From the NCBI GenBank assembly GCA_048013815.1, contig CM106585.1, positions 17,298,001-17,362,000 of the forward strand: a stretch of 64,000 bases of DNA. Direction: 5' to 3'. The position numbers and the translations under genes are program-made. This DNA comes from Setoptus koraiensis. Its lineage: Eukaryota > Animalia > Arthropoda. Positions 13,460-59,267 of this stretch are shown piece after piece. Under the pieces are notes generated by a model. The model ran no database searches and was not told the origin of the DNA. It saw only the letters and a program-made list of their open reading frames with translations. Each line of letters opens with the position of its first letter. Positions within the stretch are counted from its first letter, which is position 1.

Positions 13460-16400
13460 ATGACAAGCGAGGAATCACTAGACGATGAGGCCGATCTACC
13501 TAATTTGCTGAGCGCCGTAGACGATCGCACCGCCCAAGAGCTAAGGCTAACAAAGAATTTGTGGAAATTGAATTATCATGAGGCTTCTATATTCATTGAG
13601 GAAGGGCTGAACAACGACAAATTTGAGAATCATCCAAAGAATAGACGGACATCGTCGCAAAGAACCTCGCCACCCTATTACACTGATTTGATCCAAGACA
13701 ATCGCATAAGTAGCATGAGTAATCGGTCGCCAAAGACCGGGTTAGATAAATTGGAGATGATGCAGCAAACTAAAATAACTTTTGAAGATGACGATCGCGG
13801 CAATAACCATAGAACTGTTAGCAACGACGAACAAGATTTAAATGAGTTGATACCTCTATCACCGAAAATAAGTTTGAGCAAGCCAATGATTGAATCTGTG
13901 ATGGCCGTCGAGCCGTTATTATCTAATGTGCAACGTCACAAGACCAATCCGTTCGCTAGGCACAAGGTAAATTGAAATCGGTTGTTGTTGGTATGGTTGC
14001 GATCGTTAGACTCTATCTAAACTGTCAATATCATCTCATTTAACCTCTTCTTCTATCTGTTATCACATTATCAATATACGGGCTTTATTTTTATACATAA
14101 ATATACATAGTTATTGGGAGGCCAATACACCACCATTGAGACGTATATTCTGGTCCACAATAAGTACTTTTATCAACTGGATTTGTTGGCAAGCATAGTG
14201 TTGCTACTATTGGCATTGGTTGAGCCTCCTGCTGTGGCCGGATACAATTTGGCACCTAGCATCCATGCCTCAATAGAGATGTTTGCTTTGGCCATTGTAG
14301 GTATAGAGTTGTTGTTGAAGTTTCGTTGGATGGGCCCGAGGCAATTCTTCCGTCATGGCCGGACAGTAACAAAATTAATAGTTCTATTAACCATGATTAC
14401 AGAGGCCGTAGTGATTTTTATGCGCTACTCTACTCATGCCCGTTACTCTAGGGCACTGCGGCCAATCTTTTTGATAGACAATCATTATTGTCACGGCATT
14501 AGGAGGGCCATTAGGCAGATATTTCAATCATTACCACCGATACTGGACATGTTTACATTGATGATGTTCTTCATGTTTATATTCTCAATATTTGGCTTCT
14601 ATCTGTTAGCCAATGACGGACCCTATTTCTCCAATATGGCCTCAACAGTGGGCAATCTGTTAGTGCTAGTGACAACAGCCAATTTGCCCGACATTATGAT
14701 GCCTTCCTATGGCAAATCACGTTGGTCATCATTATTCTTTGTACTATTTCTAATAGTTCATTTATATCTATTGACCAATTTAACAATGGCTGCCGTTTAT
14801 GAGAGTTTCACGCGCAAAGAAAAAGAGAAATTCCACAAGTTGCTGTTACACAGACGAAAAGCTTGCCAGCAAGCGTTCAAATTGTTGGTGTCACGACGTG
14901 TACAGCATCGTATTCAATTCAAGCAATTCATGGGCCTAATGCGTTTCCTAAATCCACAATGTACCAGTTTCGATGCATTTCTGGTGTTTAAAGCTTTGGA
15001 TACGGACAAAAGTGGCCAGTTGTCATTACAAGAATTTTATCAAATATACGACTTCATCGATTTGAAATGGCGCTTGAAATATCCTCACATAAACTGGTAC
15101 GACAATAGTCAGTGTATACCTCAGTTTGTCAAGCAACAACTAGACAATGTTAGACACGTTGTGGAGCACAGTTACTTCGCATGGGCCACCAATTCTATAA
15201 TTGCCATCTCGGCTTTGTTACAATTTGTTGAGGCATCAACACTGGCCGGTGTGTCAACAAGTCAAGAATTACAAGACGGTGGCAGCAACAACAGCCTGAT
15301 TGTTGGTCAGCAGACCAACAGCAGTACAAACGATTTGACAGCAGCGCCCACAACTAAGTTCATCCAGCAGGTGGAAATAACGCCCGATTTCGTGTCCACG
15401 TCAGTGTTCATAGGTATATATTCGGCGGAAATTACATTGAGGGCTTTCGCTCTAGGATATCAGGAGTATTGGCGTAACTACTGGAACAGGTTTGATGCGG
15501 TGGTACTGACGATATCCATTGTGGGTCTATTCACGGGTTATGTCGGCCATCATTTGGGTTGGCTCATCGTGTTGCGAGTGGTGCGATTAATGAGATTGTT
15601 TGAATTTAAGCGACGCTACAAGGACATTTGGCAAACACTAACTTATATACTGATGAAACGGTTTGTTAGTATGACTTGTGTCATTATGATAATGTACTAC
15701 TTTTTTGGCATCATAGGCATGGAATTGTTTTCGCAATACGATCTACGAAATTGCTGTAAGAACACCTCGCTAGAGAGCCAATTTAAGTATGAGGTGGGCC
15801 CACATCAAACCAGCGATTACCCCAGCTATTATTTGAATGATTTTGGCGATGTTGTGGCCAGCTATCTGACATTGTTCAGTATGAGTAGCTCCACTTATTG
15901 GCTGGTGACCATGAATGCCTACGCTATAGTTGTTGGAACGAATTTGGTGCGAATATATTTTGCCATTTATTATTTGTGTAGCATAATAGTGACAAATATA
16001 GTGATAGCATTTATATTGGAATCATTTTTGTTTAGGATTCATTATAGAAGAAAATTGGGCGAGGCCTGCGACGATGCCAATCTATTCACCGTGGACGTGT
16101 ATTTAAGCAAGCAAGAGATGGAATATGCAAACAGGACATTGGATAGGAAAAATGAGAGCTTGAATTATGTAAAGAGAAGCTTCACAATGACACAACAACA
16201 ACAAGCAACAACCAAGGTCTCTCTCATGGACAATCAACACTACGAGGGATACCAGCAAAATCATGAACATTTACTAGGCAAAGAGCAACGACATGATAAA
16301 TTAGAAACAATCAAGCAAAAACAACAACAACAATTTGGCATCATTACTACCAACGACAAACAGCAACATGACAGCAACTACAAAAGTCCACCATCTTTGA

Positions 16401-16870
16401 CCTCGTCCCCGCCAAGCCAGCAACAGCAGCAACTGAACGGCAGTTACGCGTCGACATCGACACTAACAAACCGTTCAATTGATTCAACATCGGCGGGCTC
16501 GTCAGTGTATGCCGCCGCCAACACCACCAGCTCTATAACATCATCGGCGAATTTTACCACTAGTAGTCAACCAAAACAACAACTAAAGCAACAACAGTAT
16601 GCGCTCAAAACTAATGTTTGCCGACTCATAAGGGATGGTGAAAAATTACGCCAAGCCAGCGATCCGAATGGCTCAGTGCTTATGTATCAGGCCGAACAAA
16701 CGCGAAACAAATTCTCATTCACGATGAAAATGTACGCCGACGAAGTTAAAGAGTGGCTCCAGGAGGCCGACAGGGCCGATCGCGAGGAATTGGCCAGACA
16801 GCGTCTGTTGAACATGACAGACATACATTCTCATTTCACCGCCAGGAGGACCTACTCATGCTCGTATTGA
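13460..16870 (+). CDS. TPCN1: Two-pore channel TPC1
   Basis: Exons 13460-13966 and 14111-16870. Motifs WKLNYHEASIFIEEGLNNDKF, RALRPIFLID, GIRRAIRQIFQSLPP, TTANLPDIMMP, EF-hand-like DTDKSGQLS, RFVSMTCVIMIMYYFFGIIGMELF and MKMYADEVKEW. Confidence 0.93.
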
Positions 16871-54533: not shown

Positions 54534-57500
54534 TTACTCGTCACTTTTAATGAGATCCTCTTTTTTGTCTTGCTTGCTGTCATTGTTGTTGTCGCTACTG
54601 TTTGCACTTCCGTTGCCATTTAGCGCCAACGGTTGATGCCTGGGCAACATTGATTGGTTGATCTTGCCACTACCTGAATGATTGCTGCCACTATTCGGAT
54701 CGTTTGTCCTAAAGTCTATATTCCATGTTTGCGACGATTGTGGTGGTATTATGCGCCGCGGTTGATGATGTTCAGTAGAGAATTTGCATTTCAATATTCT
54801 CATATAAGTGCGACGAAATTGTGCATTGCATAAGGCATAACATAACGGATTAATCGTGCTATTTATATAGCATAGGTAATAGGCAAAATTCCAAATTTTT
54901 TCCGGCACCAAATCCTCGCCGCCTGATAATGTCTTAATTAATACTAACACATTATAGGGTAACCAGGTAACAATAAACACCAATAGCAGTGTGGACAACG
55001 TTTTGGCGGCCTTCCTTTCGCTTTTAGGCTGCTGGGGATGATGCGACGAATAGGCGCTTGTAACAGCTATCTGATTAGATTGATTGTTGTTGTTGGTGGT
55101 GGCGCCATTAGAATTACTTTTGTTGTTGCTGGTTGTTTTGGTTGTTGTTGTCGCCTCTGAAATCGAGCCGGTCGAATCCGTGGTTGATTTTGAGTTTACC
55201 ATAGCCTGTTTTCCTTTCATGCTTGTTGAATCAATTGCATCATTGTTTAGGGGCCTCTTTTTATCTTTGTGATTTACTATTTTGTTGTTGTTACAATTTG
55301 TTGTTTGTACATCACTATTGCTATTGTTGCTGCTGCTATAATCTTGCGTTATAACTGCATTGCCAAATTTAGCCTTGCTCACTGATTTGTTATCCTTGTC
55401 AGAGTTGCGCCGTTTCTTCGTTTTATTAACTCCATTGTTTGTTTGTTTATTCGCTGACTGTCTAAATAAATGGGGACACATTGAACGCCACGATGCACTC
55501 GATTTTTGACGCTGTTGCTGATGCAGCATCATGCAATCTGGGCTCGTTTGATAGTGCGACTGTGACGGGTCCAATTCAATTATGTCGCCACTATCATTGA
55601 TTGCTGGTGATTGTATATCTTTGAAGGTGAGCTTCTGATTGAGTTTCTTTCTCTTGGCCCCCAGTTGCTGTTGGTCAGTGTTGTTGTTGTTGTTGTTGCT
55701 TGCTTTATTGATTAAGGGCTCTTGTTGTTCTTGTTCCTCCATTGTTGTCAATTGATATTGATCCTTATTCAGAGATGTTCTGTTCTTGTTCTGTTGTTGC
55801 TTTTGTGTTTGCTGATTTATTTGTTCATCGAAAGAAACTGCTATCAGTTTGTCGTCTCCCTTCATCATGTCGTGGCTCGTATGTACGGCACTGGCAACGG
55901 AATTGTCGCGCAATTGACGACAGCCACTTGTTGACGTCGAATCAGCAGCAGCATTTGAACTGCAGCAACAGCAACAACAAACCGGACAATAATCTGTCAA
56001 ATTACTATTTACCGTTATGGCGTCTGCTTTGGTGTCGTAATAACAGTTAGAGCAGTCCAGTTCGTTTTGACACGAAGTGTTTTTCGTTGTTTGTTGTGCG
56101 CCTAGAATGTTGTTTTGCGCACAACATTGGGCCTCTTGAGGAGAGCAACAGTTCAAGTTGAGCTGAGATGGGCTCTTATTATCCTTTAGACTCTTTAAAT
56201 TGTCGCCGTCATCCAATAGCAACTGGTCATCGGGTGGCTGCTGCGACAATCTGTCGTTTGACCGTTGTTGTTGGGATAGCACGGTTGGACAGCAGCTACA
56301 ACCACAATTACAAGCTTTGGTCTTGCTGTCCGTCGTTGTTGTTGTTGTGGCAGCACTACAATCCACACCAGAACAGATACAAGCTGTGGTCATCTTTTTG
56401 CTTTTGCTATGCTGACTGTGGCTTCGTCTTCTTGTTTTGTCCTTGCCAACCAAGACTGAATCTTGACCAGTGTCATTGTTTTGGCCGGTTGTGTCGCACG
56501 AACTGTTGTTGTGATGGTTCCTGGTGGAGGCACAACTGTGGTGTCGTTGATGATCGACCTGCTGACAGCAGTTGCAACAATTGTCCACGCTGTGACAATG
56601 ATTACTATTGGTCATTTTGCAAGTTTTGATTTTTGATCTAGATTTGCGCGTGACGCTATGGTGATGATGGTGATGGTGTTGATCTATTTCCGGTGCACCA
56701 CTCAACTGCTGCTGCTGTTGATGATGGTGATGACTGTACTTGTTGTTGTGATGAGCGTGGTGATGATGGTGGTGGTGCAAATGCTGTTGCTGGTGCTGAT
56801 GATGATGGCTGTGATTATGATGGCCGGAATGGTGTGAGTGGTGCGAGTGATGCGAATGGTGATGCGAATGATGATGAGAATGATGATGAGTTGCGTGAGA
56901 ATGATTGTGAGAGTGATGCCGATGTCGGCCCATGTCGGACATTTTGTTGAGCTTGTGATCAGTGTGGTTGCGCAGAGTTGCATCGTCGTCCGCTAGGCCA
57001 TCATTGGCCAGATCCATCAGGGGCTCGACGGCCAGATCTTCTGGCGCGTCCAATTGAGATTGTGATTTTGAGCGCTCACTCTGTTTGTCGTCAATCATTT
57101 TAATGCAGGCGTTTTTATCACTTTCCAATTGGATCAATATGGTGTAAATGGATGAATCGAGCCGCTGATTGGGCCCTGTCGATGGGTGCTCACAAAGATC
57201 GCTTGCGTTTGTTTTATATGTGTTGTTTGTTATGAGTGAATTGGTTGTTTTTGATTCACCTGCTTGTTGAGCCGATTGCAACAGACCGTTGTTGTTATCA
57301 CAAATTGTTTGCGCCAGTTTTGTTTGTTCGAGCAGGCTCAGTTGCATTGTTGGCTTGCTCGATTGTTGTTGCTGCTGCTGACTGTTGCTGCTGTTAATGC
57401 TGTTGGCCGACGAATAGCCCAATGTGGGCACCGACGAACCCAAATCGAGACAACTCATCTGTTGTTGGTATGATTCAATGTGATCCAGTTCCGATTGAGA

Positions 57501-59267
57501 CGGATAAACTTTGCGCCATATATTACTTCCGGCGCCAGAAGCGCCGCCTACACTAGCGGAAGTCTTTTTGTTTCGATCGTTAGAGCGCGTTCGATCGGAT
57601 GTGTGAGCATTGTGCTTCGTCGAGTGGCTGCCGTTGCAAGCCACTTGGCAAGGCGACAGTGACAACGTTGAACAGGTGATCAGCTGATGGCAACCAGGCT
57701 GAGATGAGCAGCTTGTGGATAGGAGCTTGCGTTGCATCTTACAATTAGCTGACAATTGTTGCGCACTCTGACAATTCTGAGTGCTCTTTTTTGTCGTTGC
57801 TGTCTTGCCAGAGCCCAGTTTTGTGGCGACACCCGTTAGTTGGCTCGCATTTGATTTGCAATTCAACTGCCTGCATTGCGAATGCGCATTTCTCGGCTTG
57901 CTCCAATTACAATCATCACAATTGCTATCCATGACGCAACACATGGGACAACGATTGCGCAATCGCTGCCTCTTGCTGTTGCACTTGCTGTTAGGCTGAT
58001 TAAGTTGCTTTTGTGAATTGTTAACAGCGTGCTTCGGACACTTGGGACACGAACATCTAAATGGGAATGGGGGCGAGGGCAAGTTGTCGGCCATGGTGAG
58101 CGGCTTGGGGCGACATCTACAATTGGATTTCGACAAATCGCCACTGTTGTCGTCGTTACTATTACAGGTGCATTGAAGTTGGCCATATAGATCCAGAGAA
58201 CAACAAACAACGGGCGCATCGTCGGCGTTATTAATTAATTGTTGCCTCTGCCGCTGTTGTTTCTTGCTGCTGTTTGTTCCTGTTTGCTCGATAAATTGTC
58301 TGTTGCCCTGCTGTGGCTGTTGTTTTAGGTTATCATTGCTGGCCGCCATCACTAAATTATCACTCAATTTATCTTGTTTAGTGTGCTCATTCTCGTGGTT
58401 AGCTTGCGCCTGTTTAATTGATTGCGCTATTGTCACTACCTGTTGTTGTTGTTGTTGCTTGTGGTGCCATGTCAAATCATCCCTTTCGTTGGTCATCGTC
58501 GTTGGCTTCTCATCCGCGGCTGTCTTATTCGCCAGCCTAATGTTACTGTCGGCTTTTGTCTGCTGTCTCAGTGACATTTGATTGGTGGCGCTGACACTGG
58601 TCATCAGTTTGACATGTTGTTGCTGTTGTCGTTTGGATAAGGGACGTTGTTGTTGCTTCTGGCTACATTGTTGCCTTGTTTGAATGGTTGCTAATGGACG
58701 TATAGGCGCTCTATTGGGTGCGGCGGCGCCCACTCCCGACACCAAGAACAATGTTGTTAAATCGCGGTATCGTTTTTTGGTTTCGCGCCAAATGCGCCAA
58801 TATAACACGATCATTATAGTGACGGGTATGTAAAAGGCAGCGATGGCAGTGACAAACGTCAAATAACTGTTTGCCTTGACAAATTCAATTTCGCACTTGT
58901 CGTTGCCCTGAACAGTACGTTTGCCTTCAATGTAGGGCCAGGCATAACTACATTCGTGTGTGCGTCAGATAAAACCAAATAAATAGTTTGTTATTTTTTA
59001 ATATATTCAAATCATAACGAAAAATAATTTAAATTTAGCTTTTTATTTTTTTTTTCTATACTTACATCCAAGGAGGCCAGAGCACCAACGATATGAGCCA
59101 AGCGCCGGCAATCATAAGACAGGCGCGAGTTGTTGTGCGACGGGCGCGATAAGTCAAGGGTCTTGTGACAGAAAAGAACCTGTCGAATGAGATTATCAGC
59201 ATGTTGAGGACGGCAGCGTTTGAATTGAGATAGTCGAAGGCGAGCCAAGTGTCGCACATAAAAGCAC
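54534..59267 (-). CDS. mAChR-A: Muscarinic acetylcholine receptor, A-type (TM3-TM7; 5' exons outside the window)
   Basis: Exons 59267-59066 and 58947-54534. Motifs [66 protein letters not shown] and [17 protein letters not shown]. Confidence 0.92.

Follow-up and report, generated by a model that had tools for sequence, protein, structure and literature searches.

Replacement of both filter II asparagines in the sole two-pore channel of the mite Setoptus koraiensis and in eriophyoid TPC1s

Can an animal two-pore channel (TPC) work with a second selectivity filter that has lost both of its asparagines, and what would such a pore conduct? This question is raised by a TPC1 gene in a stretch of 64,000 nucleotides from the Setoptus koraiensis genome (hereafter the window, from whose first letter positions are counted). 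In human TPC2, the filter II residues V652-N653-N654 are the reference for Na+ selectivity, and the pore is narrowest at the two N653, which are central to that selectivity (PMC6424560). Plant TPC1, with Gly at the N653 position, is non-selective (PMC6424560), and in simulations of TPC2, Na+ selectivity was abolished fully by V651T/V652T and nearly so by N653G/V652M (PMC11844439). In the literature, we found nothing linking eriophyoid mites with two-pore channels, and nothing on an eriophyoid-type filter among work on the evolution of the invertebrate TPC1 filter.

An intact, single-copy TPC1 gene

The gene is located on the + strand, starts with the ATG at 13460, and consists of two exons with 1088 codons (169 + 919):

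13460..13966, + strand: TPC1 exon 1, 169 codons, the cytosolic N-terminal part with the conserved NYHEASIFIEEGLNNDKFENHP motif
13967..14110, + strand: TPC1 intron, 144 nt, GT..AG, phase 0, with three in-frame stops
14111..16870, + strand: TPC1 exon 2, 919 codons plus stop, with the Ion_trans match, the match to mouse TPC1 (6c96) and the AF2 model

The two exons were searched and modelled separately, the 1088-residue product being the sum of their codons, and residue numbers (e.g., T594) follow the 918-codon ORF at 14114..16870 (+). Exon 1 was 67% identical to the N-terminus of orthologue P0002 over 58 residues, and its place was also matched by a canonical acariform TPC1 query (P0029) when S. 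koraiensis' own genome was searched. The splice signals read AAG/GTAAAT at the donor (13966/13967) and ATAG/TTA at the acceptor (14110/14111), and the predicted junction (...ARHK/LLGGQYTTIETY) was the same as in the uninterrupted coding sequence of the orthologues. Exon 2 contains both six-transmembrane (6-TM) repeats, a linker that may be EF-hand-like, a Q/S-rich tail and a conserved C-terminal helix.

The 144-nt phase-0 intron sits just before IS1 in S. koraiensis TPC1. Since eight orthologues (P0002, P0003, P0005, P0009, P0011, P0012, P0013 and P0015; contigs of 3.4-22 kb, P0002 being on 22-kb contigs) encode this junction without an intron in one ORF, the intron would either have been kept only in this early-branching lineage or have been gained there. 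Eriophyoid TPC1s also carry a poorly conserved insert of ~50-110 residues between the NYHEA motif and IS1 (window 13640-13966), and a Q/S/T-rich tail precedes their conserved C-terminal helix (window 16150-16620); other animal TPC1s are without both. At this low-complexity insert and tail, short contigs from other places of the genome matched in the read lay-out. The largest ORF of the window lies elsewhere (54534-58862, - strand) and has 1442 codons.

The window gene is an intact TPC1 orthologue and the sole TPC of the genome. Pfam PF00520 (Ion_trans) matched two stretches of the protein (E 1e-46), and the best phmmer match in the PDB was mouse TPC1 (6c96; E 2e-133, three stretches, about 36-45% identity), with further matches to zebrafish TPC3 (6e-50), human TPC2 (5e-32) and plant TPC1 (~1e-30). 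In the tree, the sequence nested within the acariform/arachnid TPC1 clade. Five EF-hand Pfam models matched residues 276-312 weakly, with 19-21 bits, below their gathering scores of 25-30. The AF2 model, a monomer of ORF residues 1-660 that carries no pore geometry, had a mean pLDDT of 81 and showed two S1-S6 sets with two pore helices in each; in pore-loop II, a helix (580-591) was followed by a break at 592 and a second helix (593-607). Compared with the PDB, the model retrieved mouse TPC1 6c96 first (E 8e-29), at a global TM-score of only 0.38, probably because the monomer model lacks the repeat arrangement of the domain-swapped dimer.

A search of the own genome (48.7 Mb, two contigs) with the window protein returned this locus only, the next matches being four-domain channels with E 1e-8 or weaker; with the window protein and canonical acariform P0029 as queries, no second TPC1 and no TPC2 or TPC3 was found in the 48.7 Mb. 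These searches with two queries settle one objection that the earlier note on this DNA had raised against its own reading, namely that another, canonical copy might exist. We also considered an alternative exon with a canonical filter and rejected it: exon 2 is uninterrupted, and the canonical query matched no other pore-loop II in the genome. Two other public runs, each from a different study, have contigs that span the whole 3.6-kb stretch with zero differences, although both may be source data of the assembly. Run X5, which has another organism label and comes from another study, reached 20 of the 30 bins and agreed there throughout, the filter bin lying outside its coverage. None of the runs carrying the stretch is recorded as RNA. 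Run X1 (guessed to be RNA) was rejected as evidence of transcription, for it yielded only two ~200-nt contigs in the Q-rich tail, with four differences. These X1 contigs (window 16159-16555) may derive from a related strain or species or represent a low-complexity match.

Replacement of filter II across eriophyoid mites

The filter region and the two residues that stand for the asparagines of other animal TPCs are the following:

15881..15901, + strand: filter II, M590-S-S-S-T594-Y595-W596, which replaces L-T-V-V-N-N-W
15893-15895, + strand: T594, standing for mouse N648 and human TPC2 N653
15896-15898, + strand: Y595, standing for mouse N649 and human TPC2 N654

The window reads ATG AGT AGC TCC ACT TAT TGG at 15881-15901, which is M-S-S-S-T-Y-W in frame with the 918-codon ORF. 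Because pore-loop II aligned to mouse TPC1 without gaps (mouse T640-L-F-E-L-T-V-V-N-N-W650 on window T586-L-F-S-M-S-S-S-T-Y-W596), both filter II asparagines and the two preceding valines are replaced (V646S, V647S, N648T and N649Y). The loss of both asparagines, which the earlier note had reported, was thus borne out by the in-frame reading and by the alignment. By its sequence, the protein is a TPC1 orthologue that lacks the V-N-N filter defining the Na+-selective functional class: S593-T594-Y595 stands in its place in filter II, and the T-A-N of filter I, the other feature of that class, is present (T188-A189-N190).

We aligned 121 sequences, i.e., 29 eriophyoid TPC1s (the window sequence and 28 orthologues, from Aceria tosichella, Fragariocoptes setiger and 26 from public sequencing runs) and 92 other animal TPC1s from spiders, a scorpion, ticks, Leptotrombidium, insects, crustaceans, a myriapod, a limpet, a brittle star and fish. 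Over the channel core, the window sequence was 57-72% identical to the 28 eriophyoid orthologues, its nearest proteins, which marks the genome as that of an eriophyoid (gall/rust) mite. The column of the first Asn (mouse N648) held Thr in 29/29 eriophyoid sequences and Asn in 92/92 others, and that of the second Asn (mouse N649) held Tyr (24) or Phe (5) in eriophyoids and Asn in 91/92 others. The first valine was Ser or Gly in eriophyoids. The second (column 593) was N, S, A, T or Q and formed the sole variable filter position, with Ser in the window sequence and Asn in 18 of the 29. Neighbors of the filter had changed in eriophyoids as well (E589S, L590M and I598A/T).

Parts of the channel outside filter II that bear on permeation and gating were located as follows:

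14501..14515, + strand: IS4-S5 linker R130-R131-x-x-R134, equivalent to mouse R220/R221/R224
14672..14686, + strand: filter I, T187-T188-A189-N190-L191, with the canonical TTAN and a clade-specific F to L change at the fifth position
14774-14776, + strand: T221 in IS6 (M221T); Met in 92/92 other TPC1s
14828-14830, + strand: K239 in IS6, equivalent to mouse K331
15575..15595, + strand: IIS4 voltage-sensor arginines R488, R491 and R494, all intact
15995..15997, + strand: N628 in IIS6, Asn in 29/29 eriophyoid sequences; mostly Thr (75/92) in other TPC1s

The IIS4 arginines were invariant or nearly so across the 121 sequences. R130, R131 and R134 occurred in every sequence (29/29 eriophyoid, 92/92 other), and K239 was found in 28/29 eriophyoid sequences, with one gap. 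Their mouse equivalents (R220/R221/R224/K331) are what we take to be the PI(3,5)P2 site; She et al., in 2018, reportedly placed the basic residues R220/R221/R224 of mouse TPC1 there. Also conserved were the cavity Asn N222, the T-T-A-N of filter I and the C-terminal helix. The alignment agreed with the earlier note that the flanking pore helices and the basic residues of the linker (R130, R131 and R134) are intact; K239 is present as well. It did not agree that filter I (TANL) is non-canonical: this filter is essentially canonical, as mouse TPC1 has TANF and the change is conservative. Further changes of the eriophyoid pore were L225M in IS6, M617G/A, T623S and M624I in IIS6, and F191L after filter I, with A617, S623 and I624 in the window sequence. 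The changes in IS6 and IIS6, together with F191L and L590M, probably represent repacking around the filter.

The distribution of these changes was scored on columns with at least 85% agreement among non-eriophyoid sequences, a column counting as changed where the eriophyoids had abandoned that residue. By this measure, 7 of the 8 conserved columns had changed within the decapeptide 589-598, compared with 29 of the 200 outside it (Fisher p = 2e-5). The P-loops and S6 helices had 18/62 changed columns, versus 18/146 elsewhere (p = 0.005). The position two before the conserved Trp is the selectivity locus in Nav and Cav too (T-x-E-x-W). As a control, we looked at Cav1 of the same genome, in which the filters of domains I and II had kept their canonical Glu. 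This L-type channel is encoded by a single ORF of >2000 codons (L018:3739-9981, - strand; G000:C1:14650000-14659999).

Coding DNA was available from eight orthologues, and dN/dS was determined for four close eriophyoid pairs; the window gene was excluded, its pS being >0.8 (saturated) versus every orthologue. For the whole gene, the ratio ranged over 0.03-0.07; in the channel core, it was 0.02-0.04, and in the P-loops and S6, 0.007-0.024. These values are rough because dS was near saturation (0.8-2.3), yet lie far below 1. This check, proposed in the earlier note, indicated strong purifying selection on eriophyoid TPC1 between close pairs within the clade. Across species, the Thr was encoded by ACA, ACC, ACG or ACT and the aromatic residue by TAT, TAC or TTT, so that the filter residues had been held despite near-saturated synonymous change.

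In a maximum-likelihood tree, the 29 eriophyoid sequences formed one clade (100% SH-aLRT) whose stem measured 1.73 changes per column and which lay inside a well-supported acariform group with Leptotrombidium, P0029 and P0040. Leptotrombidium and P0029 had kept V-N-N-W, and P0040 had A-N-D-W. The acariform comparison suggested in the earlier note thus confirmed the new filter for the eriophyoid clade but not for acariforms at large, as Leptotrombidium and two sisters are of the VNNW type. Within the eriophyoid clade, the window TPC1 and Fragariocoptes branched at the base, in an unresolved fork. Because these two branch there, the tree places the filter switch as one event, before the living eriophyoids diverged.

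The window TPC1 shared no more than 72% identity with any other sequence, and the S. koraiensis genome may belong to an eriophyoid lineage that diverged early or has been poorly sampled. P0040, a JGI sequence and sister of the eriophyoids on a branch of 1.52, has the filter II M-V-A-N-D-W, with Asp for the second Asn; no other sequence of the 92 non-eriophyoid TPC1s departs from Asn at either position.

Permeation of the altered pore

Because published work on TPC2 ties the replaced filter residues to Na+ selectivity, the filter change probably alters which ions pass, and the odds of a measurable change in ion selectivity appear slightly better than even. We favor, with a probability of roughly 0.6, the reading that the gene encodes a functional voltage- and lipid-gated TPC1 whose pore was remodelled on the Eriophyoidea stem and would have a different permeation. 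On that stem, the filter II valines would have become Ser (Gly or Asn in relatives), the constriction Asn (mouse N648) Thr, and the outer Asn (N649) Tyr or Phe, and residues packing near the filter (L590M, M221T, M617G/A, M624I, T628N and F191L) would have changed too. The new filter would afterwards have come under strong purifying selection. Filter I and the gate region are retained, as are the voltage sensor and the PI(3,5)P2 site. The protein would most likely still be an endolysosomal cation channel gated by voltage and lipid. That the pore conducts, and the manner in which its selectivity would differ, we infer from sequence and from characterized relatives; the likeliest difference would be a lost preference for Na+, i.e., a cation pore of lower selectivity through which Ca2+ and/or K+ pass more readily.

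The pore might instead still select Na+ much like that of other animal TPC1s, the filter having drifted while other residues took over; we consider this unlikely, but it is the most probable of the alternatives. The Thr594 hydroxyl, N593 (in most species), N628 in IIS6 and N190 of filter I would be the candidate substitutes. Such compensation would fit the stem of 1.73 changes per column, which points to a general acceleration, the unaltered TTAN of filter I, and the Asn present at 593 in 18/29 and gained at 628 in 29/29 sequences; either of these two asparagines could partly restore a Na+ site. However, column 593 is variable (N, S, A, T or Q) and holds Ser in the window sequence, and hence is unlikely to provide an essential ligand. 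Moreover, all four residues that experiment or simulation has linked to Na+ selectivity in TPC2 were replaced together, the change is strongly concentrated in the filter compared with the rest of the protein, and the Cav1 filter of the same genome shows no drift, all of which argues against mere compensation. Part of the change may still be drift followed by compensation, as the long stem shows fast evolution of the whole protein.

A pore that had stopped conducting altogether, its luminal mouth shut by the bulky ring of Tyr or Phe and the protein kept as a scaffold or sensor, seems improbable. An aromatic side chain does take the place of a pore-facing Asn, but constraint within the gene is strongest in the pore (dN/dS 0.007-0.024), and the conserved gate, cavity Asn N222, voltage-sensor charges and lipid site are hard to square with a channel that never opens. 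Hardly credible is an artefact or a dying gene, i.e., an error of sequencing or assembly or a pseudogene beside a canonical copy at another locus. In its favor, no run carrying the stretch is recorded as RNA, and the two perfectly matching assemblies may be the source data; against it stand the intact 1088-codon, two-exon reading frame, a genome without any other TPC, and strong purifying selection. Sequencing error, which the earlier note had named as a possible objection, is moreover ruled out by the same filter type in 28 independent orthologues from many runs.

Significance and comparison with characterized channels

If the favored reading of a functional channel with different permeation is true, an altered pore has been held throughout the history of a superfamily, and eriophyoid TPC1 would be a natural mutant for how filter II of TPCs sets selectivity. 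The chances are about equal for and against a selectivity unlike that of any characterized TPC, for example that of a non-selective or Ca2+/K+-preferring endolysosomal channel. A mite superfamily that has replaced both asparagines and both valines under tight constraint offers a natural experiment, which could show whether an animal TPC works with another selectivity, and which of the co-changes in IS6 and IIS6 a new filter needs. Since the genome has no other TPC, the gene also bears on the endolysosomal ion flux that such extremely reduced animals need.

Compared with mouse TPC1 (6c96) and other animal TPC1s, the mite protein has the same architecture of two 6-TM repeats, linker and C-terminal helix, and shares filter I TTAN, the IIS4 arginines, the equivalents of R220/R221/R224/K331, the cavity Asn and the T-L-F...W frame of pore-loop II. 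It differs in filter II (S-S-S-T-Y-W versus T-V-V-N-N-W), in M221T, M617A/G, M624I and T628N, and in its low-complexity insert before IS1, which has ~100 residues, and its Q/S-rich tail. Human TPC2 (6nq0, 8ouo) is alike in fold, in its dimeric two-repeat design and in an Asn in IIS6 (N687 in TPC2, N628 in the mite), but it is a distant paralogue (E 5e-32) that keeps both filter asparagines. Zebrafish TPC3 (6v1q), another paralogue (E 6e-50), shows that filter II of an animal TPC can deviate slightly (V-N-Q-W); unlike the mite filter, it keeps the central Asn.

An arthropod lineage in which the sole gene of a channel family has a lineage-wide non-canonical filter is also described for the aphid voltage-gated sodium channel, which carries DENS rather than DEKA and is predicted to have changed selectivity (PMC4332693). 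This is an analogy only, as the aphid protein is a four-domain Nav of another channel family. The best precedent for a TPC that is without the central Asn and is not Na+-selective is Arabidopsis TPC1 (5e1j, 5dqq), the vacuolar SV channel, which has Gly in place of the central filter II Asn and lacks Na+ selectivity (PMC6424560, PMC11844439). The plant channel is distant (E 1e-30) and differently regulated, by luminal and cytosolic Ca2+, and it has kept the outer Asn (M-G-N) where the mite filter has Thr followed by an aromatic residue.
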